From contig CM060732.1 in assembly GCA_030704615.1 (NCBI GenBank), forward strand, positions 61,938,001 to 62,002,000: 64,000 nt of DNA, read 5' to 3'. A program made the position numbers and the translations under genes. Origin of the DNA: Takakia lepidozioides (taxonomy: Eukaryota > Plantae > Bryophyta). Each line of letters starts with the position of its first letter. Within the stretch, counting starts at the first letter, position 1. The notes under the pieces were generated by a model. It was not told the DNA's origin. It saw nothing but the letters and a program-made list of their open reading frames with translations, and made no database searches. Positions 7,063 to 58,955 of the stretch are shown here, piece by piece.

Positions 7063-9090
7063 CAAAATCATCTGGATGACCAACCATCCGTTGAGCCATC
7101 GAAAGAATTTCGATTTATCTGATATTAGTCTGGGACCTCTAAGAAGGTGTCTCAAACGTACTGGCAAAGTTTGGAAGCAAACAAAAATGATTTGGATGGA
7201 CAACCATCCGTTCACCTGTTGAATGTATTCCGATGGATCTGCTATTGCTTTCGGACCTGTTGGACTGTGTTTCGCGTGCTCACGATTTTTTTTTCATTCA
7301 GTTTTTGAATGGGGCGTGTAATGTAGCCATATGCAACGTGCGTGCCAAATTTGGGAACGAACATAATTCATTTGGACCCAAAACCACAGTTTCTTCCCTG
7401 TTTTGCACTCCAAACTTGATTTGTGTTCAACTTCATGCACTCTTTATAGAGAGTTCTGCAATAGTGAGCGAAGAGAACACTTTTTTTTGGGGCATTTTTT
7501 ATTGGTTCAAATTTTGGCGGGGGAGTAGTGGTGGGATGCTGGAAGCCGCAGAACAAAATTGAGCCAAAAACAAAATCGATACGTGCCAGAAACCCCCAGT
7601 GAAAGGCAGTGCAAACCTATTTATTGGCTTAAAATTAATTTAAATTCAATTACATTATGGAATGGCTGGTGTCGAGGGGGAGGCAAATGATTTATTCGTT
7701 GTTGTGTCTCGCACATGTGTCGCACATATGTTCAAGCACATGCGGGCAAAAGAGGGGCTTCAACCACATCCGTTCAATGGGTGCAATAGCTGTGCACGCA
7801 TTGCAGGATTTTTTTTTCGCAATGAACAAAAACCAAATGACAACTGAACGCCTCATTGGCCCATCGAATGAATTTTGATTGATCTCATATTATACAGGGA
7901 CCTATCAGAGGGTACATTGAACACACTGGCCAAGTCTCAAAACGAACGAAAATCATTTGGATGGGCAACCATCCGTTGGCCCATTGAACGAATTTCGATT
8001 GATTTCATATTACTTTGGGGCCTCTTCCATGGCACATTGAACATACTGGCCAAGTCTCAAAGCGAACCAAAATCATCTGGATGGCCAACCATCCGTTGAG
8101 CCATCGAATGAATTTCGATTGATATGATATTAGTCTTGAACCTCTGAGAGGGTGTCTCGAACGTACTGGCAAAGTTTGGAAGCAAAAAAAAATGATTTGG
8201 ATGGACAACCATCCGTTCACCCGTTGAATGTATTCCGCCGGATCTGCTATTGCTTTGGGACTTATTGGACTGTGTTTCGCGTGCTCACGATTTTTTTTCA
8301 TTCGGTTTTTGAATGGGGCGTGTAATGTAGTCATATGCAACGTGCGTGCCAAATTTGGGAACGAACATAATTCATTTGGACCCAAAACCACAGTTTATTT
8401 CCTGTTTTGCACTCCAAACTTGATTTGTGTTCAACTTCATGCACTCTTCATAGAGAGTTATGCAATAGTGAGCGAAAGATAACACTTTTTTTGGGGGGCA
8501 TTTTTGATTGGTCCAAATTTTGGCGGGGAAGTAGTGGTGGGATGTTGGAAGCCGCAGAACAAAATTGAGCCAAAAACAAAATCGATACGTGCCAGAAACC
8601 CCCAATGAAAGGCAGTGCAAACCTATTTATTGGCTTAAAATTAATTTAAATTCAATTACATTATGGAATGGCTTGGTGTCGATGGGGAGGCAAATGATTT
8701 ATTCGTCTGTTGTGTCTCCGCACATGTGTCGTACACATGTTCAAGCACATGCGGGCAAAAGAGGGGCTTCAACCACATCCGTTCAATGGGTGCATTAGCC
8801 GTGCACGCATTGTAGGATTTTTTTTCCGCAATGAACAAAAACCAGATGACAACTGAACGCCTCATTGGCCCATCGAACGAATTTCGATTGATCTCATGTT
8901 GCACTGGGACCTATCAGAGGGTACATTGAACACACTGGCCAAGTCTCAAAGCGAACGAAAATCATTTGGATGGGCAACCATCCGTTGGCCCATTGAACGA
9001 ATTTCGATTGATCTCATATTACTCTAGGGCCTCTTCCATGGTACATTGAAGATATTGGACAAGTCTTAAAGCGAACCAAAATCATTTGGA
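7063..9090. repeat. Tandem duplication of about 1.0 kb containing ~120-bp subrepeats
   Basis: Units start at 7063, 8068 and 9077 (stub) and are near-identical. The subrepeat caaaatcatttggatgggcaaccatccgttggccc...attgatctcat recurs within them. Degenerate inverted copies lie at about 9190-9510. Confidence 0.9.
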
Positions 9091-10679
9091 GGCAAATGAT
9101 TTATGCGTCTGTTCATTTATTTGTGATTTAATCGTTAATGGTGAAAATGATAAACAAAAGGTTCATTGATAAAAAAAAAATTGAATGATTTGAAATTTTG
9201 CCAGTATGTTCTACATGCCTCTTACATGGACCGGAGAAGTATGAGATCAATAAAAAATGGTTCATAGGAGGAACCAATGGTTATTTGATGTGCCGATTTC
9301 TGAATGCTTTCAAACTTTGCCATTGCATTATACATACCCTCTTAAAGGTATCAGACAAGTATGAGTTCGATTTAAAATATTGCAATGGGTGAACCAATGG
9401 TATCTTCATTCAGCAATTTTTGATTGTTTTGAAACTTTGCCAGTATATTGTACATGCCGTCAAACAGGTATGGAACAAGTATGAGGTCATTCAAAAATGG
9501 TTCAAAGGATGAACTTCGTATTTCCAAAAATTACGTAGACTATACAGTGGGTTGCACATTTAAGTTTTTGCAACCTGAGACCTTTGGCCTACTCCCTACG
9601 TTTCTAGCCTTTCTAGTCATCTTCATCTAGATTTATTTCTTGTACTGTCTCTATTTGCCTTCATGTTGCGGTTCTACAACCTATGTGATCTATAATATAA
9701 ATGATCTCAACTTTAATTTTTGAATAATATATTTAAGATTATATAATAATAATTTAATTAATAAAAATTATGTATTGATTAAATTTTAAAAAATGTCAAC
9801 AATAATATTCCTCAAAAATATAGTTGAGGTACTATATTTAATAAAATAAAAAGATCTAAATATAATTTTGGAGTATAAATGGTACAACTGATGTAGATCA
9901 ACACTAAGACATCATTGTATTGGCATCTGGGTCTAAGGTTCAGTCCTATGTGGTGTCTTTGATTGTGGCTGTACTTGTTTACGTTTTATGGCCTTGAAAA
10001 TGGACTTATTTCTCCCAAGCAAAGCCTAGTTTCTGACATGATGTGCAAGTGTGGTCTTAGGCTCAAATCAACCAATTCAGTTTGTACCAGTGTTGGGCCG
10101 GGTATGGATGGTGATCTCCAGTATCAAGTATCAACAAAGTTATCATCCCAAAGGTCAAAGAACCTAATCAGCGGGTCCCACTGAGGGAGACACCATGGCT
10201 GCGGGGTAGCAACTTTGAGATAAACCCCCCATATCCGCCACCCTGCATGGATATGTCTAGGCTCCTGATAGAAACTCGCATGGGGTTGTCTTCCCAAGGG
10301 CTCAAACCGAGTATGCATGCAGAGGGTCAAAGGGTGTAGGGAGGCATGTGAGCCCCTTGGCAGCAAATCCATACTCAATTTTCTTATTACTTCACAATTT
10401 TGTTTATTTATGGTACATGTGGTATTTATGGTATTTTTGCCATCTCAAAGATACAATTTTCATACATGTATGTCTTGTATGTGCATGCAAAAGTAATACT
10501 ACTAGACCCTGATTGATAACCGGAGGTTCTTATTAAGTGTTTCGCATAGGTCCGCTTTGCTGCATTAGTAAGCCACTTCAATGTTGATAACCTATGGGAG
10601 TAGCCACAAGTTGAAGTGGCTTTCTCATCCTGGCTTTCCAGGTTGTGGTGTTGGATCTTCTAATTCATAATATGCCACT

Positions 10680-13305: not shown

Positions 13306-14433
13306 CCCTTCAAGGACGAGGCGACCCGTATCGGGTCGGGTCGAAATTTCGATTGGATGATAAATGCGCAGATCATGTCGGATGAAAACGATTCCTGAAC
13401 GAAAAGTGTAGCCCATAAATATTTACGGCCCCCTGTGTTGATCGCACCCTAAAAAATCTAATCCCCCGCCGTCAGGATTTTTTGGAATCTGGAGGGGTAC
13501 CCGAAATCCTGTGGTTTTGGGCCCGTCAGCAGGTTGACTGGCAGACGTGGCAGGCAGGATTGGGGAGGGTGGGCGTTTGCCGGCAGCGGGTGACAGCGGG
13601 GGGCTGCATGTCCGCCCGTGCGGACAGCGGCGGACCCCCGGCACGCGCGAAACGCCTGGCACGTGGCCCAATCAGGTGGCAGGTGGCGGGGGCGGGAGAT
13701 TCTCACCCGCGTAAGGGTTTAGGTGCGTGGCCCAATCAGGTGGCCGTTGGCAGGTCATGGAGGGAGAGCGCTGAAACGCAGGGTGGAGGGCCCCGTGACT
13801 TCCTTGGTTTGTGATGACGTGGCCGGATTTTTGGCCGGAAATATCCACCGGCTCCGGCAATTCTTTGCCGGAGCTGGGATTCAAGTAGGGATTCGGTTTT
13901 TTGGCAATCTTAGCCTACAAACAGCTTAGAATGTGGAATTTTTTTTCCAGGGTAACTCGGTAGGTAGGCAAACAACAACATGACCAGAGGAATTTGGATT
14001 CCCTCACAAATTGCCCCACATTTGGGGGTATGTGTTTTTCCCATGAGAGACATTGGCATTTTGACCCCCCTGTTTTTCCATACAAAGCAACCATTATGCA
14101 TTTTTGGAATTTGGCTCTGGAATTTTGGGAGGCTTTGCTGTGGGTGCCATATAATCTGAATCTGGGTAGGCTGTATCAATGAAAAATAAAAAAGGTTGGC
14201 AATCTGCTTGGTCAAACCAAATTTTCATGTTGAAAATATATCTAACAAAAAACAAAAAGCCTAGAACTTTTGTTATAATCTTCCACTTTAGACGGTCAAT
14301 TCTCCTGAAATTTTTACTTCAGGTGCATGAAGTAGGTAGGATGACTTTGGAACGGTTCATCCCCTCGGATGTTTGTCCAATGGGAGATACACCCTCATCC
14401 GTGAGGGTATGTCTGGTTTTAGACGGTGAAGGG
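13306..14433. mobile_element. Non-autonomous piggyBac-like element
   Basis: The ends read TTAA|CCCTTCA ... TGAAGGG|TTAA, with TTAA at 13302-13305 and 14434-14437. The interior is GC-rich and non-coding, within AT-rich flanks. Confidence 0.55.
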
Positions 14434-15664
14434 TTAATATAAATTTAATTACATTTAAACCTTAAATTATTTTATTTAAAACATAACTAATAAGGATAAT
14501 AATAAAACTGATTAGAACCGAGTTAAATATATGTAATATTAGGTTTTTTCTTACTTATGTACTTTTTATTGAAAGCTCAAACTAAAGTTTTGAGGTACCT
14601 CATAAAGTTACAGTTGCAGATATATTGATAAAGGGGAAAAATAAAATTTCAAAAGATGTTATGTATAAAAACATACACAGTGGGTAAAGAGTAAGCCCAG
14701 AAAAAACTGGTTGTAGCTGAGATTCAAATTCAAATAATTACTGATACAACTAAGGGCACCATAGGTACAGAACAAAAAAAGGTTTCTCAATGTATGTGTT
14801 GAAATATCTAAAACTTCTCTACTATGGCCTGTGAAGGTCCAGATTCCTCATATGTCTTTATTCCCCTCAATAGATGACACAGGTTAGGATGAGGCCCACT
14901 GTTACAGTTGGATAGACCTTTGAATAGTTAGTAAACTTGTCTTGGGCTTACCTTGGCTGGAAATATGGGTGACCAGACAGAAACTGCCATCTGCCTAACA
15001 TGCTTAGCATTAGGTTTTCTATTTAAACCTGGGGTTTGAGACTCTGGGGCGTGTGTTTTGGAGTGTTCAACTTTGTGTACGGTGGTGTGGATGAATGCAG
15101 CAGGAGTCCTGGTGATGTGGGTTGGCAGGCAGATTCATCCCTGTGGAGCATCCAAAGTCCTCTACAACAGCCTTGCATGCTTGGCTATACGCCCTAACAA
15201 TAGCTGTCACTGGAATCATTAGTTAGCAGGAAATTGGCTGGCCCCTAAGTTTTTTTTTTAAAAAAATAAAATAAAATTTCTTAAACAGGGGGATGGAAGC
15301 CCTGGTTAATTTATTAAAGGAAGTCTGGGGGAAAAAATAACCTCAGGAGGCAAGCTGTCCCGACCATGATGCCCATATTATCATCAAGGATTCCTGTATG
15401 TAACGTGTGTAGTTTGTACACATTTGTTGCTGCAGTTTTTGTAATGCAGTTTTTAGTGTTGTGCTTGTGAGTGGCTCTTGTTAACTTTGTACAGTCAACT
15501 CATTTGGGTCTTTTATAAATTTCCTGTATGATATGCACGGCTTAAGGCAGCGACGCTTTAGAGAAACAAGTCTATGTATGTAAGGAGAGGGCCCTTGAGA
15601 GGGCCGCCTCATTTCCTGTTGCAAGAGGAGGGGGGGAGGGCAAGAGATCGTGAAGGAGAGAAGA

Positions 15665-15804
15665 GTGGGGCGAAAGGCTCATACAAGTGGTAGAGAGACC
15701 TGAAAAATAGGAAAGCTACCTACCTCAAGAGATGGAATGGATTACTCAAGAAAGCCATGCAATTGTCAGGACTCGGCGATGTGGATTAAGCGGTCATCCT
15801 CTTG
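15665..15804 (+). pseudogene. MADS-box pseudogene
   Basis: 15706-15804 reads NRKATYLKRWNGLLKKAMQLSGLGDVD*AVILL, against the MADS consensus [32 protein letters not shown]. There is an in-frame TAA at 15787 and a frameshifted start (GTG GGG CGA at 15665). Confidence 0.85.
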
Positions 15805-15889
15805 ACCTGCAATACCTCTCGACCGCCTAATCAACATTGACCATACTGCTATGCATCCGTTTTTCTGCGTCTCTTCTTCTGGGTCTGAG

Positions 15890-16110
15890 AATGGTCGCGT
15901 TGCTCGCCATTTCTGCCTTTGTACCGTCACTTTAATTTGTCCGGATTGTACTGAGCAGCTAGCAGCATTTTGGGGTAAACTAGTTATCCAGGAGGTCTTC
16001 CCAATTCAATGTCATATTCTAGATACTGTATCTCTCTCTTGTGATTTGGTACTCTGCATCCATCTGCAGAAGCTGTGTTCATTACTTGGTGTTATTAGTT
16101 GATTGAATGC
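15890..16110 (+). repeat. ~220-bp direct repeat, copy 1 (copy 2 at about 20675-20900)
   Basis: Both copies share agcagcattttggggtaaact(a/g)gttatccagga.gtcttccca...ggtactctgcat.catctgcag..gctgtgt. Confidence 0.85.
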
Positions 16111-18638: not shown

Positions 18639-20762
18639 ATGCAGCCTTTTCCAATGGCTTCAGAAGGTTCCTGCTTCACAAGCCGCATGATGGATGCGCT
18701 CTTCTACTCAATGGCAGTGTATGAGCCAACGCTGGAAGCTGTCCTTACTGATCTTCACAGCAGATTTGGCAATGTTAGCCCATTGATGGAGTATGGCTTT
18801 GACAAAGATGGAAAACAAGCTATCTTTGCTGCAAGAAGTTCCGAAGGCCACATAATTGTTGCCTGCAGAGGAACTGTAGGTGTGAAGGACGTTTTGCAAG
18901 ATCTCAAGTACTTCCACACGCGGCTTGCTTATGCCAGGGGAGCTGCACACTGGGGGTTTGCAGAGAGAGCCCAAAGTGTCCCAATTGATCTCTTTTGTAA
19001 GCTGTTGAGCGCCGGAGAGCAGATCGTCTTCACAGGACACTCTCTGGGCGGGGCTGTGGCCTCTCTTCTGAGTCTCAGGGTACTGGAACAGAGCAAAGGG
19101 ATGTATCAACAACAAGTGCAGTGCATTACATTTGGATCACCCCTCTTTGCTAGCCAGAGTCTGGCTGAGGTCATCAACGCTAGCTACAAGGATGTGTTCA
19201 TTCATGTAGTTTCAAAGAGAGACTGCGTCCCCAAGATTTTACCAGTTGTCTCTGCCATCCAGCGATTGCTGTACGCCAGTGAGGATCACCTCAAGGGTCT
19301 TTCGGTGTTAACAAAGTGGCTAGAGTGCATAAAATGGCTGCCTGTAGCACCCCTTATAAGAGGGATTGAAAGAAGAATCCCCTCTCCGCTTAAGTTTCTG
19401 CTGCGGTGCTTGATGAAGCTGGCTTTGCCTTCACATGTGACAGGGTCTTATGCATTTGCAGGGCATGTTCTGATGCTGGACTCAGATGCCACAATTGAGA
19501 GCTCCCTGAAACTGACTAGTGCAGACGACCTAAATCTGTGGCATTCGCAGCTTAGTTTTGCTCTGGGCACAGGATTTGATGCTTCCATGATTCAAGAGCA
19601 TGCGATGGCCAGCTACCATGATGGCATTGTGCGTGCATTTTCTCATGTGTTTCTAAACCACAAGGTTAGCTCAAGTGGCCTCTGCGTGGAGGCTAGCTCC
19701 TTGCTTTTGGAAGAGAAGCGTGAATGCTACTCAGGTTTGTCTTGTAAGAGTCATGCTGTTGGAAACCAAGACATACAATGGAGGAGCTGGGAGGACGGCT
19801 CTAGGGAGAGCCTCGTGGAACATAAAAAGAGCATTCTCATTCGGATGACTACGAAGGAAGGAGATTGGAAGGAAGTTCGGTTTGTCGGTTGTGAAGTATG
19901 TGGGGTGGGCCAACAGTTGGTTGCGAAGGAAGTTTCTGCAACAACCTCCCTTCAGGATATTGACGTATGGCAGAAAGATCAGGATGAGGGAAAGGAACTA
20001 CTTAATCTTTTCAAGTTTGTGCAACAATCTGGCTCAGGGATAACTCGTGGAGATGGGATCGACTCCAGAAGTGTTCACTTCAATGAAATATTTCAATTCA
20101 AATTTTGCAGCTTCATTTTTTCCTCTGGAAGCAGTCTAGAATTGCACGATTCAATGGAGGATATTAGCTCTGCATCAAGTGCAGAGATCGACAGGAGTGG
20201 GAAATGGATATCAAAGAGCAGGAGAAGTCTTGACAGTGGTTTGGTTTGTTGCAGTGATGAAGACAATGAAGTTTCCTCTGTAGGATATGCAACTGTGACA
20301 CTGTCTTCAATGACAAATGTTGGATGTTGTGCAGCTAGTCAGAGCCTTATTTGTGCTTCTTCCATAAAGACAGCCACAGATTGCACATGTTTTCACTGGG
20401 ACTCTACATACACGAAGCGATTGCCTGGCAAGAAACATGGAAGTGATGCTATATTGTTGAGATCCATGACTTTCACTGGAGATTTTGGTTGGCCTGCCTG
20501 TCCAAGGATGGAGGGCAAGCATCTCTTGAGATGTCAAACTAAAGTAAGCAACTGCCGGGCTTGCCCTTCCCTTGAAGTTTGCAAACATTTCAATGGAAGG
20601 AAGGCTGCAGGGAAAGCTCCATCCAAGGAGGCTCGACGATCACAATTTAAATTTGGGTTGTTCGTTGGAACAATTGGTCGAGTTGCTGGCCATTTATGTG
20701 CCCTTGACAACATTTGTCTCTTCACTTTCATTCGCATTGTATTGAGCAGCATTTTGGGGTAA
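18639..20762 (+). CDS. Class-3 (Lipase_3) alpha/beta-hydrolase in a single long ORF; start codon uncertain (ATG 18639 or 18654)
   Basis: The 713-codon ORF contains VACRGT, AHWGFAERA, the nucleophile motif FTGHSLGG, CITFGSP, DCVPK and EHAM. The C-terminal half is not recognisable. Confidence 0.85.
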   Translation: MQPFPMASEGSCFTSRMMDALFYSMAVYEPTLEAVLTDLHSRFGNVSPLMEYGFDKDGKQAIFAARSSEGHIIVACRGTVGVKDVLQDLKYFHTRLAYARGAAHWGFAERAQSVPIDLFCKLLSAGEQIVFTGHSLGGAVASLLSLRVLEQSKGMYQQQVQCITFGSPLFASQSLAEVINASYKDVFIHVVSKRDCVPKILPVVSAIQRLLYASEDHLKGLSVLTKWLECIKWLPVAPLIRGIERRIPSPLKFLLRCLMKLALPSHVTGSYAFAGHVLMLDSDATIESSLKLTSADDLNLWHSQLSFALGTGFDASMIQEHAMASYHDGIVRAFSHVFLNHKVSSSGLCVEASSLLLEEKRECYSGLSCKSHAVGNQDIQWRSWEDGSRESLVEHKKSILIRMTTKEGDWKEVRFVGCEVCGVGQQLVAKEVSATTSLQDIDVWQKDQDEGKELLNLFKFVQQSGSGITRGDGIDSRSVHFNEIFQFKFCSFIFSSGSSLELHDSMEDISSASSAEIDRSGKWISKSRRSLDSGLVCCSDEDNEVSSVGYATVTLSSMTNVGCCAASQSLICASSIKTATDCTCFHWDSTYTKRLPGKKHGSDAILLRSMTFTGDFGWPACPRMEGKHLLRCQTKVSNCRACPSLEVCKHFNGRKAAGKAPSKEARRSQFKFGLFVGTIGRVAGHLCALDNICLFTFIRIVLSSILG

Positions 20763-20900: not shown

Positions 20901-22177
20901 ATGCATGTCACACCAGGTGATTATTTGAATCCCATATGCCACACTCTTCCAGGTGCCCTGGTAATAAAGATACAGGCTAGTGCACAGTGGAAGTACTTGG
21001 CGACTGGCGTTAGAACCTGGCTGCTGCAGAACGTACTGCCAGCAGGACATATATCTAAACCAAGAGTTGGTTGCAAATGAAGAAAGAGCAAACCCAAGTT
21101 GGAAGAAACAAACTCTAGATTGTTACTCCGCACCTGGAAGCATTTTCTGGCTAGAAAAAGGGGCCCACACATCGTCTGGGTTGAAATCCCTCATTGCAAA
21201 GCCAGACTTCCCACTCGGAGATTTGCGAAAACTCACAGACATTTTTCTTTGCTTTGATGATTGCTGGAAAAAGATGGAGGACTCGTTGCTTGCCAATTGA
21301 TGTTGCTAACGATGTGTATATCTTCCCTGCAATTATAACGTCCGTAGCAGTGCAGCAGGAACGTTACAACGGCTGCTGCAGAGACGGTGATGAGCGAGCG
21401 GTGGCAGAGCTGGAGCGTCAGCGACAAATTGGGCTGGAGCTAACCATGTGCAGGGCCCACACATGCGTGTGACCGTTGCGCCTTGTGGCAGGACGTTGGT
21501 GGCTGCGCCACAGCTTCCTCATTGAAACCAAACATTACCTAGCTATCCGTGGTTTCGAGAAGAGAAAGAAGAGCTTGAAACGAAGCACATTACGTAGCCT
21601 TGATTACACTGTTACCACAGTTAGTCTTAATTCCCTTGATGTTTCATTTATCCTGGGAGCATCGAATGCTTTCGGCGGTCTAGAAACATTCTGATTAAGG
21701 ATTTGTGCAAGATAGACAAACAACAAGCTCAATGATCTGCAAGGTAGGAATTAGGCCGAAGCCTGAGAACCTGCAATGAGGTACTGCACAACCTCCCGGC
21801 TAAGCACACTAACAGCCTCCTAACAGCTGCAGTGACTATACTGGCTGTCTCTATGCAGAGTTCGTCCTTCGGATAGATTGATGGTGATTTCTACCTCGTT
21901 AATGAGTCTCGTAATGAGTGCTTCGGAAGGATAGATCGAGGCCGACTCAGTGTGTATAATCCTCTATTGTAAACTTTCAGTTAGAGTGAATCCTCATAAG
22001 TAAGGTTGTAGTGTTGTAACAGTTATTTACAAATGGCAGCTCTGCACCCACCTTGATGTAAGCTTAGAACTGCTGGATAGCCCAATGTCTGTCATAGAGT
22101 ATATATATATATGCTAGACTCGTGCACAAGATCCAGTATGGCAGTAGGTCACGGGCTTGAAACTTCTCATCAAGAAA

Positions 22178-22307
22178 GCCATGGAATTGTCGGTTTCTTT
22201 CCCTAGTTGATTTCGGCAGTCACCATGAACAATTCGCCTTGCAAACTGTGTACATAGCACTTGACCCTGGAAATCAACCTGGGGAAGAAAACTGGCAACT
22301 CCATGGC
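22178..22307. ncRNA. Candidate MIRNA or hairpin RNA derived from MADS-box sequence
   Basis: Arm 22178-22222 pairs with arm 22262-22307 over about 45 bp, with G:U pairs, about 5 mismatches and one bulge. The 5' arm region encodes LIKKAMELSV. Confidence 0.55.
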
Positions 22308-22319
22308 GAGCGCCTTTCC

Positions 22320-22444
22320 CTCACGTCTTTCGCCATCTTCCCTCGCTTCTCCCTCACCATCTCTTGCCCTCTCCCCCTACTTTTGCTCGTCTATCTCACG
22401 TCTCTCTCTCGCAACAGGAAACGAGGCGGCGCTCTCCCACAAGG
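22320..22444 (-). repeat. Inverted copy of the MADS pseudogene 5' flank (15593-15680)
   Basis: The reverse complement ccttg..gagagcgccgcctcgtttcctgttgc...gagggcaagagatggtgagggag..atggcgaaag matches 15593-15677. Confidence 0.8.
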
Positions 22445-22878
22445 TTATGGCTAAAAAGGGAATGTATCAATTGTTCCCTGTTGAAGACATGGCTATAAAT
22501 GGGAAAAATATTTTCCGTTTTTTCTTTGTTTTTCTTTTTGGGAACAGGAGACCCCTTTTATTTTTATTTTTTTACCCCTATTCAACGTTGGGAAAACTAT
22601 AAAAACGAACGAGGGATTTTTATTACAAAGGGAACTTGTCAATTTTTTTACATGTCCCCGTGTCTTCTGGGACGGGGACATCTGAAGTGGACAATGGATG
22701 ATCGGTCCCTGTCAGCACATGACCTACATTTTACATTTTTTTTATCACTATATTTCACATATATAAAACTCAAGTTATGATTGGCATTCTCCAAAAAAAA
22801 GAGATATATATAGCACAAAATATCTGGCCATCACTATTGTGGGTCTGGAAGCAAGAGATTATCACATAGACTATTCAA

Positions 22879-23811: not shown

Positions 23812-26107
23812 ATGTTTTCTGTGGATATGGGGAAGCCACTTGTACCCCAGGTGCGAATTCCAACCCTTTACTTGCAAAACACACTGGAGTCCATTCTCCT
23901 GACGGATTGTCCCTGAGAATTGACCCAAAGCTCGTCCCATATTCACCCCCAGCCCATCCACTTATATATATGTTTCGAACTGACTCTCTCTTAATTCAGT
24001 TATCTAGAGATTCGACTCTTTTGAAAGTTACGTTATGTACTGTCTTGGATTCTTATCCACGGGAGAACGGGAGACGCCAGGGAGGAATTTCACATGTAGT
24101 ATCAGCAGGAAATTGAAGTAAACTATGGCATGGGAGATAGCTTTAACAGTATTTCTGTACTTGTATTTTTCAGGTCGGCTATCTCGGTGCAGATTACGAC
24201 GATTGGGTGCACCACGCAATCACTCGCAAAGAGAGCCCTCGGTTTTTTCAGAGTAACATCCTTGAGGTAGGCCTGGAGGACCATTCGTGAAGTTTGAAAC
24301 TGCGTCAAGCTGTTCATTTCGAGAGAACGCACATAGTGTAGCTCTCGTAAATCAGATCTACATTGGGCCCAAGTATGATACAGATGCATACTCGGGCCAA
24401 GGTGTAGAGCTTAATGCCGATGTCTATTGTCGGGATGGATTTTGTGAAAGAACTCAGACAAATCTAGCATTCCGATTTGCTGATGTCGATGATCGATCTC
24501 TGCGGAATAGTAAGTTCTGGTGTCGTTTGATGTACATGCATGATCTTTCTTTTGATGTTTCAAGTCCAACCCGATGAGGCAATAGCACGGATCAATCTCT
24601 GCAGTTTTTCACTCGTACAAGGTGGTGGATCATCCCTATGATCTGGGGACCAGTTGTCGTCTGGACACAAGTGAAAGCGGTGGCTGATGGCCTGCCTACC
24701 TACGAGATTCTGCCATCAATGACTGTAGGGCTTTTGCTCTGGACATTTGCTGAGTACTGCGTTCACCGCTTTCTGTTCCACACCAAAACTTCTACATACT
24801 GGTACAGACTGCTCTGCTTTTGCACCAAGTTTCCATGGAACCATAGGGGATATTGGCATTCAACGCTTTTCATTGTGGTCATTAAGAAACGTGTTGCTTC
24901 GAGCAGCTATGAATATTGCTGCTGCTTGCTAGAATATTACCCAGTATCAGATCGCATTCTTCACTTGAAGCTAGTATGCAGCGATCAACTGACCTCGTGC
25001 TGTCGTTGGATGCTTGAACAGGCCAATAACGGTTCATTACCTGTGTCATGGTTTCCACCACAAGCACCCCATGGACCCTCATCGCATCGTATTTCCTCCT
25101 CTGTTCACACTTTCACTTGGATTTCCTGTAAGTTGCTCACCCTTTCTTATTACATTGATCTCATGGAAATCCTCTTGCACTTGATAGAAATTCAACGGGT
25201 ACTGATCACCACGAGGAAGACCACGAGGAAGACCCGCACTCAGCTGAAAGTGGACCAAGGTGGCCTTTGCACGGATCCACCATGCAGAATTTGAACTTAT
25301 TTGAACTTCCATACTGTAGCTTGTTTCACTAATATCGGTACTGGACACCTCTTAGAAGCTCTATCTCCTCAGGACCCTGGCCGGAGCAGATGTCTACTTT
25401 CTGCATATGTCTTCAATCGGACCAGGGGAAACATGTGATGCATTGCTGACTGTGTGTAGATCTGGCATCTGGGGAAACTCATTTTGCCACACGGTGTGGC
25501 TCCTTCCTTAACCGGAGGCGTGCTCCTTGGGTACATTGGGTTTGACCTCACTCATTTCTTCCTGCACCGTGGTACACCGTCCAATGACTGGCTTTACAAC
25601 CTGAAGGTTTGTACATCGTTTCCACTCTTCAAAGGTTGACTCGACTCTGAGACTAAAACTCGAAGAAAGTTCCAATCTATGCTCGTGTCCCCTTTTGCAG
25701 GTCAATGTGACAAGCAGTGAGGGAGGAGAGCAGTATCGGTGAGCATAAATCAAGCGGTAGAATTAGCGGACTCTCTGAGGACTTATCTCTGCTAATCAAC
25801 CTGCCTAGGGAATAGAGCCGGAGATCTAAAAATTATACTGTTGGTTAGGTTCTTCTGATCTCCCTATTGGTTATATCTGATACCCTTCATCAATCTTACA
25901 GGCATGTACTAGAACAAATTGCACACAAAGAGTTGTTGTTCACATGGACTCCACTTACAGATTCTCGACTTGCTGCAGAAGTTGCACATAAATCACCATT
26001 TCAAGGATCAGATGCAAAACTACAGCTTCGGGATCACCAGCTCGTTCTGGGATAAGGTGTTCCATACTCTACCACCCAACAAGCTGTATGCAACACAGCA
26101 GTTGTGA
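23812..26107 (+). CDS. FAH: Dihydroceramide/sphingolipid fatty-acyl 2-hydroxylase
   Basis: Exons 23812-23850, 24174-24266, 24605-24801, 25022-25127, 25460-25606 and 25979-26107, all GT-AG. His boxes HRFLFH, HGFHHKHPMD, THFFLH and HINHHF are present. An extra upstream coding exon is possible. Confidence 0.93.
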
Positions 26108-39145: not shown

Positions 39146-39984
39146 TTAATAGTCGTATGGCTGTTTTATTTTTCCCTGAATCAGGTCTGATATTATCATC
39201 GATAACTGTCTCCATTGACATTATCTAATGTCTCTCATTTTTGAATAATTGGGAGTTTATGTCGCGCGTGTGGGAGGGCGCGCACGCCCGCACGAACGCG
39301 GGGTCGCCCTCCCCCGCTCCGCCCACCCCCACCTGCCAGCCGCGCAGCGCGGTTGGCAGCCCCGCAGCCGCCCGTGGCCTTGCCCGCACGCCGCCCGGAC
39401 CGCGGCCCTCGCCCGCCCGCCCGCCCGCCCTCGCCGCTGGGTCCGCCCGCTATCGGGTCCCAGTGGGTCTGCATTTGCTGGGGTCTGCCCAAGCTCGGTC
39501 TGCGCGGTTTGCCGCCAAGCAGCCCGATCCGGCAGACCCAAACGCACCCCAGATGATGTGCCGCCCATCTCACCATGATGTCGCACTACTATCGTAGCCG
39601 CCCGGATTTAGGGCATGGCAGCCGCCGCCAATCGTGGGCGAAGACTGTTTCATCGATCTTTTCCTCCCTCTGGTCTGTTCCTGCCAACGCGCTTCCGTCC
39701 TGCCAAGAACGTGAGTGTTGTCGTCCTTCGCTTCCACTTTTCCAGGTCGTATTGCAGGTGCTTTCGAGTGCGCGAAGGGGTACTGCAATGTATATGGCAA
39801 CGGCCATCGATGCCCAACCAGAAAGCTTTCTTATACGTCGGCAGAAGATGTTGGACTTGGGCCATGCGCGCTACATCCTGTGCGTGTTCACCAAGTTGCA
39901 ATACACCATGTGCGTTTTCACCCTATTGCAGTAGACCCTGTGCCTGTCGATACGACCCTGGTCTGCTAAGGTCATTTCATGCAG

Positions 39985-41960
39985 TTCCCCTTGTACACGT
40001 TGATGGTGTTCGACCAATGGTTGAACGGAATCAGCATGCAATCGAACATTAGACCTTATCCCGTGGATGCTAGCATTGCGTGATGCCCTCCTTCTGGAAA
40101 AGCCCAACTGGCGGCCAAATGCCTTAATTGTCGACGACGCTGAAGCAGAAATCAATGCAATCCGGTATGCCACATCTCAATCTGCCCTATGGTCTGCTGT
40201 ATGGTCTGCTGCAAGGTCTGCCATGTCTGGTCTGGTATGCCACATCTCATTCTGCCCTATGGTCTGCCCTATGGTCCGCTCCAGGGTCTGCTATATGGTC
40301 TGCCCTATATGGTTTGCCCTGTTTATCTCATGCTTGTGGCAGTGCCGAATACGAATGCCCGGTTCAGGCACTTCTGACTTTGTGGCTGCATGCAGGTCTG
40401 TTTTCACAGGAGTATGCATTTTTCTTTGCCTTTGGCATGTACGGAAGGCCTGGGTCAAGCAATCATGCCAGAAAATCAGTGATCCGGTGTCGCGCACCTC
40501 ACTTCGGTAAGCTCCCCTTCAAGTCATAATTACTCGCCTTGATGCGCGCGCCTAACTCCCAACCTAGCCGCCGGGCCAACTCGGAGCTTCGGCTGCTCAC
40601 CGGGACATGACGGTCCCCCTTTCTTCCCCCAACAGACCCTCCACCAATTTGGGCCTAGTGGAAATTCCCTTTGGTAGATGGCAGTCCGGAATAGCTCCCC
40701 ACTCCTTGGTCGCTTTCCGGCTCGCTTGCTTACTCACTAGTTTTTGGTCACCAACGGGCTTGCACCATTCTCGGGGTTATTACTCCCTATATATACTTCT
40801 ATGACTGTCCGCGGGGGTTCCACAAACAACACCATCCTTCTATGGCAAACCACCACGAAGACCCTTGATTCCCGGTGATGAGTCGCGGTGAGTCTTGGCC
40901 CACCCACCACGGCCCCATTGGACCGTGATGAGTCCCAAGACTCCCCACGACTCCCACCACAAGGTCTCCGCCCCATGTGCCACCCCCACTAAGTCCCACT
41001 AAGCTACCACCACCCCTTGTGGAGCCACCCCCACCGCAACCTGGTGTGCAGGGCTCCACCTAGTGAGCACCTCCGCCTCCTTGAGTGCCTTGGGCACTCA
41101 AGGGTGCTTCAGCCCCCCCGTACCTATAGCTGTCACTATCCCCACCACAGGGGCAGCCCCTCTGCGTCCCGACCCCCTGCCCTCAAGGCAAATGGCCGCG
41201 ACATCTGGGAACATCCTCGAAACTGTTGGCAGATATGGGTGACCTTATGTACTGCAGAGGTGGACCGCAAAAAGAAGACGAAGCTGTGAAATGGGTTAAG
41301 AAAAAATTGAATGCAATGAAAAAGAAATATCCGTCTGGTCAGTTGTTCATCCACTACATTCATGTGTACTGGGTTCCCAAAATCGCTATGTGGTGTACTG
41401 CTGCCCGCAACATTCCACATGCAAGCCAAGATACTAATGCGAGCATCGAGGCATACCACGGAAACTTAAAGGCGAGACTTAATATGGGCAAAGGCAAAAT
41501 GACCGGTCGAAGAGCCGATTGGCTCATATGGGAGTTGACTGGGCATGTACTGGTCCACTACTGGTACGGCATTCATCTGAAGACGCATGGGTTTATTCGC
41601 AACGATAAACAGGAAAAACACATTTCCAGTGCAATATGTGCAGCCCGTGACATACCTCTTTCACGTGTGACTTTGCCTACAGCGCCTGGGCAGCCTACTT
41701 ACGTGATCAACTCCTCCGATCCAAATACAACATACACCGTGTTCAATCCAGAGTCGTAGTGGGCCTGCTGCACCTGCCCGTGGGCTTTGAAAGGCAATCT
41801 GTGCAAGCACCAGGTTCGGGTCATAAAGTTGCTAAAACCAGACCTGCAAGACGGTCTCATTGTCCGGACATGTGGTTCCCACTTCAGTACTGTTCACGGT
41901 GGGCTGGAGAATTTGGACGAACACGACGACATGGCAGCATGCGACCTCGAAAACGGTAAC
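39985..41960 (+). pseudogene. MULE transposase with SWIM zinc finger, disrupted
   Basis: Motifs: FPLYTLMVFDQWLNG, IVDDAEAEINAIR, CLWHVRKAW, DTNASIEAYH and the SWIM finger CTCPWALKGNLCKHQ. It has an in-frame TAG at 41757 and a solo-LTR insertion, and the 5' region appears deleted. Confidence 0.9.
40488..41203. mobile_element. Solo LTR (716 bp) inserted in the MULE transposase
   Basis: The ends are inverted (TGTCGCG...CGCGACA) and flanked by a 5-bp TSD, TCCGG/TCTGG. Removing the LTR restores the frame KISDPGTSSKLLADMGDLMY. There is an internal TATATA. Confidence 0.88.
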
Positions 41961-44840: not shown

Positions 44841-45190
44841 ACAACAGCGCCGCGGTCCAGGGGCGGGCAGGGCCGCGGGCGGCTGCGGGGCTGCCGACTG
44901 CGCTGCGCGGCTGGCAGCTGGGGGTGGGCGGGGCGGGGGAGGGCGACCCTGCGTCCGTGCGGGCGCCCTGTCCCACACGCGCGACATAAACTCCCAATTA
45001 TTGAAAAATGAGAGGCTTATCTAATACGAAAAAACCTAGCTAGTGTAGTTTTGGTGCACTTTTAATAGCATAAAATCCCGATTGTCCTGTTACGCCGTGG
45101 AGCCCATGGGCTCACCCCGTAATCTCAGATTTCGGGCAGATAGGCAAGTAATTTTCTTTTCACGGTCATAAATGCGGTTTTTACGTGAGC

Positions 45191-45287
45191 TAAAGTCCTA
45201 TAACTCAGGCTTTAGGGGATTCAAGATTCCCACGCCCTCAGGGCTGTGGAACCTTGAATCCCCTAAAGCCCTCGTTGCAGGACTTTA
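45191..45287. repeat. Near-perfect ~95-bp palindrome
   Basis: taaagtcct..ggctttaggggattcaag..cac gccc tca gggc tgtg..cttgaatcccctaaagcc..aggacttta. Confidence 0.9.
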
Positions 45288-45502
45288 CCTAATACATAAT
45301 ACATAACCTCGGATACAAAAATATGACATTATGTCTTTGTAATAAAATCCACTTCCTTTTTTAATTTCATTTCTCACCCCTTTTTCCCCCGAAAAAAACG
45401 CGGCTTATTAACTTACTAGAAAGTTACGAAACTTACTAGAGGAGTAGGTGGCGGTGCTACGACTTGCTAGGCTAGCGTGGCAGCCCCATGAGCGCCCGAT
45501 AG

Positions 45503-58061: not shown

Positions 58062-58955
58062 TAGGGGCAATTTTGACACAAATTTTAAATTTCAAAGATT
58101 GTTCAAAATTTTGGAAATTGATTTTGTGAAATTAAATAACTTTGTGAATGATAATAAAATATCTTTGAGAATATTCCATATGTCGAATTGGAATTCCCAA
58201 AATAAAATAAATATTTGACAGATGGCTGTCGATCTTGCCAAGGTACTATGGTAAATAAATTTTGTGTATTTTTATTTTCTAATTTTTCGGTTCGGCAAGG
58301 GCAGGCTTTTGAGCCCCTTCACTGAGGAGGACGGACACTTCCATGGATTTTTCTCCGGACAACATGAGAGAAAAGGTGGATGATTTTAGTTGAACATTTG
58401 TCTGGTCGACCATGAAATCACCGGACAGCAGAATGTGAAGGCATTGGGGTTTTCAGGTCTGGGATGTCTTCAAAGACAAAATTCCTTTTTGGATAGCATT
58501 ACAGGGGGTCCTATAACCAAATTGGAGTGAGCAAGGGGACCTATTAGATGGGGCGGGCAGTGACCCACCCCCTTTAGACTACAAGAAATTTGGAGGACCT
58601 CCTCATTAAATTTTCCTTGACATTTTAAAGGAGAGGATACCCCACAGGGAACAGTTTCCTGTGGTTGGATCACTGTTCCCTGTGGGGTATCCTCATGTGG
58701 GGTACCCCACAATTTTGTTTGTATTTATCGTGCCATTAAAAAGCAGAAATCATCGGAATGCACCCCATCAGCTCCCTCGGAGTGCATTCCGAAATGCAGA
58801 ATACACCGGCCATTAGATTTTTTATTTTTTTAAATTGGCATTTCTTTACGCAAGGGAACTCCCCTCGTGTGGGGCATTCCCGGATTTTCTTGACGGAGGT
58901 TCACACTGAGGTCCTAAGAATTAAGATTTTATATAAATTGTCAAAATGGCCAGTA
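58062..58955. mobile_element. Putative MITE with imperfect 17-bp inverted ends and internal palindromes
   Basis: The left end taggggcaattttgaca matches the reverse complement of the right end, tactggccattttgaca, at 14/17. Hairpins lie at 58633-58694 and 58754-58790. Confidence 0.45.

Follow-up and report, generated by a model that had tools for sequence, protein, structure and literature searches.

A stable fold-back of tail-to-tail MADS-box fragments in Takakia lepidozioides: MIRNA gene or pseudogene debris?

Introduction

Is a hairpin whose two arms both consist of MADS-box sequence a new MIRNA gene directed against the family from which it sprang, or is it only what a rearranged pseudogene has left behind? 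MADS genes are targeted by miR444 in the grasses and by miR824 in the Brassicaceae. The question is posed by a locus in a 64-kb stretch of the Takakia lepidozioides genome (contig CM060732.1, 61,938,001 to 62,002,000, forward strand; hereafter the window, with positions counted from its first letter), where an earlier note had proposed a young or lineage-specific regulator of MADS genes. The inverted-duplication model of MIRNA origin goes back to Allen et al. 2004 (cited in PMC1790633), and Fahlgren et al. 2007 (PMC1790633) traced 16 MIRNA loci of Arabidopsis, all of them non-conserved, to protein-coding sequence that had undergone inverted duplication. [quoted passage not shown]

Structure and stability of the hairpin

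The hairpin has a stem of about 45 bp, in which 22178-22222 pairs with 22262-22307, and a loop of about 40 nt.

22178-22222, no strand assigned: left stem arm, the 5' arm on the plus strand and the 3' arm on the minus strand (repeat search and folds)
22223-22261, no strand assigned: loop, partly self-paired (folds and sequence reading)
22262-22307, no strand assigned: right stem arm, the MADS-box part of the minus copy, which reads AMELPVFF.. on the minus strand (repeats, folds and alignment)

This geometry, together with the G:U pairs, mismatches and partly paired loop, had been described in the earlier note from the letters alone, and folding of both strands reproduced it. Each strand of 22160-22320 yielded a single long stem-loop, with a free energy of -57.5 kcal/mol on the plus strand (z -5.73) and -65.3 kcal/mol on the minus strand (z -4.97); the z scores derive from 200 dinucleotide shuffles per strand, none of which (0 of 200 on the plus strand, 0 of 200 on the minus) matched the stability of the native sequence. 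Read inwards from 22178/22307, the plus-strand stem contains 36 pairs, four of them G:U, and is interrupted before it frays by a single A.C mismatch, a 1-nt bulge and a 2x2 internal loop. The minus-strand stem, followed to equal depth, also has 36 pairs and four G:U. Since the G:U pairs number four on either strand, the stem shows no asymmetry between the strands, and thus no sign of selection on the fold of one of them. The repeat search located an inverted-repeat core of 21 nt (22194-22214 versus 22270-22290) with 86% complementarity.

How exceptional such a structure is was gauged by a sliding 160-nt fold across the whole window, which gave a mean of -36.0 kcal/mol and a standard deviation of 10.0 kcal/mol. 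About ten folds were as stable as the hairpin or stabler, the stronger ones lying mostly at 39-45 kb. The hairpin is real and non-random; as it is only about the tenth most stable 160-nt locus of the window, it is unusual yet not unique, and structures of such strength are not rare in this genome. The stabler 160-nt windows, at -71 to -95 kcal/mol, fall at 39261-39640, 40841-41160, 44841-45340, 13561-13880 and 58541-58700, and palindromes are found within the stronger-folding regions at 45188-45290 and 58633-58694.

The two MADS-box copies

Two features describe the sequence from which the arms are drawn, the second of them continuing the right stem arm outwards.

22148-22255, plus strand: 5'-truncated MADS-box fragment, the plus copy (weak SRF-TF match at E 0.07, alignment and translation)
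22308-22440, minus strand: rest of the minus copy, with a start codon, a 2-nt loss, an internal deletion (about 85 nt) and 5' flanking sequence (about 100 nt) (alignments)

That both arms are MADS-box sequence, as had been claimed, is upheld by the alignments, with a weak Pfam match on the plus arm. The plus arm reads KLLIKKAMELSV; the plus copy as a whole reads ..GLKLLIKKAMELSV, then a frameshifted LSLVDFGSH (+1 frame), and then AVTMNNSPCKL through the loop. Within it, the 22-nt stretch 22170-22191 is 95% identical to positions 15746-15767 of a paralogous pseudogene that lies in the same window. The loop (22223-22261) is the 3' continuation of the plus copy's MADS box and has no counterpart in the minus copy; since the plus copy reads on through it in shifted frames, the loop is simply the part of this copy that the other one is missing.

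The minus copy has its ATG at 22336-22334 (A at 22336) and arrives after gaps at AMELPV. Compared with the pseudogene at 15.6 kb, it has lost 2 nt at codon 2 and, through an internal deletion of about 85 nt, the codons that lie between the start region and KKA. Its 5' flank, about 100 purine-rich nucleotides, is homologous to 15597-15676 and aligns in two blocks, one with 15597-15627 at 90% identity and the other with 15621-15659 at 87%, so that the earlier description of the minus strand as a copy of the pseudogene's 5' flank followed by the ATG and AMELPV proved accurate. In the SRF-TF gene test both hairpin copies turned out to be truncated and frameshifted, and neither is able to encode a MADS domain. 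These comparisons support a picture in which tail-to-tail MADS-box fragments form the hairpin, one of them having brought along its own 5' flank.

The paralogous pseudogene and the neighbouring genes

The surroundings of the hairpin include the following features.

15593-15830, plus strand: paralogous MADS-box pseudogene, with 5' flank, GTG in place of ATG, a frameshift and an in-frame stop after DVD (SRF-TF)
15892-16101, plus strand: lipase 3' fragment, a 76% copy of about the last 30 lipase codons plus about 130 nt of downstream sequence
18639-20762, plus strand: class-3 lipase gene, intact and intronless (open reading frame, Pfam Lipase_3)
22100-22115, no strand assigned: (TA)n microsatellite, TATA-like, a palindromic repeat about 65 nt upstream of the plus-strand stem base
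22492-22500, no strand assigned: putative TATAAAT-type element, some 35-55 nt beyond the 5' limit of the minus-copy homology

Positions 15694-15786 of the pseudogene match Pfam SRF-TF significantly (E 3.1e-8; 33.4 bits, where the cut-off is 26), and a protein-atlas look-up of its peptide returned SRF-TF again and nothing beyond. It reads ..NRKATYLKRWNGLLKKAMQLSGLGDVD, a stop, and then AVILL; in the SRF-TF gene test the Pfam match thus comes with a stop and a frameshift, and there is no intact domain ORF. About 60 nt behind it the lipase 3' fragment is fused on, making a chimera of two gene pieces, and no transposon ends were detected at this chimera (15892-16101). Because a MADS pseudogene is joined to a lipase 3' piece at 15593-16101, the neighbourhood clearly looks patched together from short gene fragments. 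Searching the window by tblastx and tblastn with the MADS and lipase pieces turned up neither an additional MADS fragment nor a K-box remnant.

The intact lipase gene encodes 707 aa (Lipase_3, E 2.8e-22), and its stop codon lies 1.4 kb upstream of the hairpin. Its closest relatives are bryophyte sequences, the liverwort proteins being 58-65% identical, and one relative, found on RNA-type contigs, is about 80% identical in the N-terminal half (an estimate from the alignment); one JGI contig with this relative presumably belongs, by its numbering, to a peatland metatranscriptome. The best match reaches 51% identity overall and about 72% DNA identity in the conserved half. The protein collection contained no lipase entry from the same or a near species. 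The relative's contig extends about 1.3 kb past the stop codon, and the sequence after the stop in the best relative's contigs has nothing in common with the window; to judge by these alignments, the nearest lipase relative is too distant for a comparison of non-coding sequence. The long C-terminal region of the lipase ends in a conserved hydrophobic tail (..GTIGRVAGHL..LSSILG), which is common to homologues from a moss-like transcriptome, liverworts, Selaginella and Closterium; no Physcomitrium homologue was among the matches listed.

On the other side, about 2 kb past the hairpin, the start of an open reading frame (24638-24800, plus strand) resembles exon 1 of a fatty-acid hydroxylase gene (..LWTFAEYCVHRFLFH..), the remainder of the 218-aa frame from 24638 resembles intron read-through, and the whole ORF has no Pfam match. 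The hairpin itself apparently sits in a gene-dense, non-repetitive intergenic spacer. Self-comparison of the window also revealed a tandem array at 7063-9514 whose units, about 1 kb long, are 94% identical, with internal sub-repeats of about 120 nt. Within the spacer, the (TA)n tract that had been reported at about 22100 is present, and the element at 22492-22500, which aligns weakly with TTTATAAAT upstream of the 15.6-kb pseudogene, could conceivably serve either strand.

Age and history of the duplication

Aligned globally, the arms agree at 35 of 48 positions (73%), the differences comprising six transitions, six transversions and one gap column. Over the same stretch of the box, each arm is only 59-66% identical to the 15.6-kb pseudogene. 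Two elements of the earlier proposal give way at this point: the arms diverge too far for the hairpin to be called young, and the pseudogene, distant from both arms and itself a lipase chimera, does not qualify as a source locus still lying beside it. As a direct donor it was rejected, for the arms resemble one another more closely than it resembles either of them.

What the arms share is telling in another respect. Both have an additional T behind GTT as well as a CCCYAG patch, which the 15.6-kb pseudogene lacks; there it still reads SGLGDVD, close to SVLCDVD, the MADS family consensus. Since derived frameshifts and a non-consensus patch occur in both arms and not in the pseudogene, the copy that was duplicated was probably dead already; that is, the inverted duplication would have copied a pseudogene. 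Alternatively, the arms could owe their common features to conversion between them. The proposed origin by inverted duplication of MADS-box fragments is well supported by alignments in which both arms are homologous to one protein-coding gene family, a feature expected of MIRNA genes of inverted-duplication origin. A single tidy series of events for the locus could not be reconstructed.

The hairpin considered as a plant MIRNA

The criteria of Axtell and Meyers from 2018 reportedly call for a single fold-back of at most 300 nt whose duplex is free of secondary stems and large loops, for no more than five mismatched positions in the miRNA/miRNA* duplex, at most three of them in asymmetric bulges, and for precise excision, with reads that are mostly miRNA and miRNA*, 2-nt 3' overhangs and lengths of 20-24 nt in at least two libraries. 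On the structural side, a stem-loop of about 130 nt forms on both strands, and 30 (nearly) consecutive 21-nt windows per strand have acceptable duplexes by structure only. As acceptable duplexes are thus found everywhere along the stem and on both strands, the structural criteria do not discriminate. The Rfam 15 families produced no match at gathering score across the 64-kb window and no miRNA family in 21800-22800 at E values up to 10; the searches gave only two matches, both at chance level and neither of them a miRNA.

A more searching test is whether a product of the stem would recognize MADS-box transcripts. The 3' arm had been described as antisense to the conserved KKAxELSVL region on whichever strand is transcribed. 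The paired overlap takes in AMELSV..; the KKA codons, the best conserved of all, lie outside the stem on both strands, and the conserved codons thus fall on either side of its base. A plant target score was computed for each 21-mer of either strand on the MADS box of the 15.6-kb pseudogene, the only other MADS sequence in the window. Only minus-strand 21-mers of 22165-22194 score about 5.5-6 or better, and these reach 4-13 nt beyond the stem base. The best of them, within 22167-22193, pair with the pseudogene at scores of 2-4; because they run 5-11 nt past the stem base, they are not duplex products of the hairpin. No stem-internal 21-mer on either strand scored 6 or better on the pseudogene. 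In the usual base-to-loop mode of processing the precursor is cut about 15 nt above the stem base (PMC3787264), and a duplex excised in this way would represent the degenerate patch instead of the conserved KKAMELS codons.

A plausible parent or target was also sought. No intact MADS gene was found in the 64-kb window, and a search of metagenome contigs with a degenerate KKAM(E/Q)L codon pattern, which returned 22 loci, did not find the parent gene. Only one of the 22 (L016) is SRF/MADS-like, and it is not plant-like in appearance. Its SRF/MADS-like stretch at L016:87-106 (..KRKKGLIKKAMELSLLTGVKIFLTIF..) contains exact KKAMEL codons; by its looks it was taken as a non-plant SRF-type gene, and the KKAMEL match as coincidental.

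Origin and likely status of the locus

The hairpin structure, the homology of its arms, the degeneracy of the copies and the chimeric neighbour are matters of observation in this analysis. From them a scenario may be drawn in which two already degenerate copies of a MADS exon 1 (5' flank and MADS box) would have landed tail to tail in the spacer between the lipase gene and the downstream gene. The plus copy is missing its 5' part, and the minus copy retains its 5' flank and ATG alongside the 2-nt loss and the deletion of about 85 nt. The overlap of the two, spanning the codons AMELSV..VD..AV, can pair into the imperfect stem, which would become a Dicer-like substrate if a transcript crosses the locus, placing it at best at a "proto-MIRNA" stage of the birth-and-death cycle. 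On balance, and by a modest measure, the sequence evidence favours regarding the hairpin as a structural by-product of local rearrangement, that is, as inert or nearly inert pseudogene debris. Speaking against debris are the plant MIRNA structure, the 5' flank retained on the minus copy and the TATA-like elements on both sides, as well as the gene-dense, non-repetitive spacer and the MIR824 precedent of a MADS-born MIRNA. We infer that the locus is mostly or wholly inert, and a regulatory function appears the less probable of the two states.

Several other accounts deserve consideration, the most serious of which grants the locus transcription and denies it an effective target. A drifting proto-MIRNA or hairpin-siRNA locus might be transcribed on the minus strand from a remnant MADS promoter, or on the plus strand, with the TATA-like tract as its promoter or as read-through of lipase transcription, and Dicer-like cutting would then release low-abundance, imprecise RNAs of 21-24 nt. 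The geometry and stability of the hairpin suit this account, as do the 5' flank copied along with the minus arm and the TATA-like elements; moreover, if the contig of the lipase relative is an mRNA and the 3' UTR is equally long here, the lipase transcript would end near the hairpin, and drifting, non-conserved loci of just this sort were described in Arabidopsis by Fahlgren et al. (PMC1790633). The homology upstream of 22440 to the 5' region of the other MADS copy is weak, however, so the promoter is putative, and we regard this account as unlikely. Quite unlikely is the idea of a genuine MIRNA, specific to the lineage, with a 3'-arm product that would cut the mRNAs of a MADS subfamily within their KKAMELSV codons. 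The MADS origin of both arms and the low scores of the minus-strand 21-mers of 22167-22193 on the paralogous pseudogene speak for it, and MADS-targeting miRNAs have arisen independently in Physcomitrium (MIR538) and Marchantia (miR11687, miR11681) (PMC4788410); yet the 21-mers that pair well overrun the stem base, the interior of the stem is a frameshifted, non-consensus patch, and a matching intact MADS gene was found neither in the window nor by the codon-pattern search of metagenome contigs.

One further version of a functional locus may be considered: a working lineage-specific bryophyte MIRNA or phased hairpin-siRNA gene, in which both arms and the 5' flank can still be traced to the donor, processed from loop to base, could yield a base-proximal small RNA antisense to the AMELSV codons that trims the transcripts of a type-I-like MADS subfamily. 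We hold this to be very unlikely; were it true, the locus would be an independent bryophyte parallel to MIR824/AGL16. Placing the hairpin within a multi-copy mobile element, such as a MITE, a Pack-type element or a gene-capturing Helitron, strains belief most of all. The joined MADS and lipase fragments at 15593-16101 do resemble transposon capture, and strong hairpins occur at 39-45 kb of the same window, but neither the hairpin nor its flanks have a second copy in the 64 kb, and terminal inverted repeats and target-site duplications are absent around both the hairpin and the 15.6-kb locus.

Comparison with known systems

Among established systems, the locus invites comparison with the endogenous hairpin-siRNA loci that arise from long inverted repeats, such as IR71 and IR2039 in Arabidopsis. 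Like these, it consists of sequence copied locally in inverted orientation, whose transcription would produce double-stranded RNA; unlike their stems, which are hundreds to thousands of base pairs long and nearly perfect, its stem of about 45 bp is mismatched and closer in size to a miRNA precursor. The general class of hairpin-siRNA inverted-repeat loci has been described (PMC1790633).

The bryophyte MADS-targeting miRNAs form a second reference group, comprising Ppt-MIR538a-c in Physcomitrium and Mpo-miR11687.1 and Mpo-miR11681.1 in Marchantia, where the target sites lie within the first 120 nt of the MADS genes (PMC4788410). Like them, the hairpin would give a lineage-specific bryophyte small RNA antisense to the MADS-box part, at the 5' end, of MADS mRNAs; whereas they are backed by read counts, degradome peaks, Northern blots and reporter assays, the hairpin is described from sequence, with no Rfam match. 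Should the stem in fact release small RNAs that cut a MADS mRNA, the locus would stand as a clear case of a bryophyte MIRNA born from its own target family with the donor's 5' flank still attached, and would add a further independent origin to those by which MADS-box genes came under miRNA control. Even so, such an outcome would extend a known pattern, as both MADS-derived and MADS-targeting miRNAs are already documented.

The closest parallels are with MIR161, MIR163 and MIR824, young Arabidopsis genes that arose when gene sequence was duplicated in inverse. As in these loci, the homology of the arms to a protein-coding family extends beyond a single 21-nt site, the arrangement is tail to tail and the stem is imperfect; as with MIR163, the minus copy brought along 5' sequence of its gene of origin, and as with MIR824, the donor family is that of the MADS genes. 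The three were established through the sequencing of precisely excised small RNAs and the validation of targets, in contrast to a hairpin read from genomic DNA; moreover, its donor, unlike theirs, looks like a pseudogene, and the conserved codons straddle its stem base. The locus fits the birth-and-death picture of Fahlgren and colleagues, probably at its non-functional end. It shares with ordinary rearranged and chimeric pseudogenes the frameshifts, the internal deletion, the lost start codon of its paralogue and the fusion of that paralogue to a fragment of an unrelated neighbour, and it differs from ordinary pseudogene fragments in that an inverted juxtaposition happens to give a stable fold-back. 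At present, it offers a textbook-style case of how the rearrangement of a pseudogene makes raw material for MIRNA genes.
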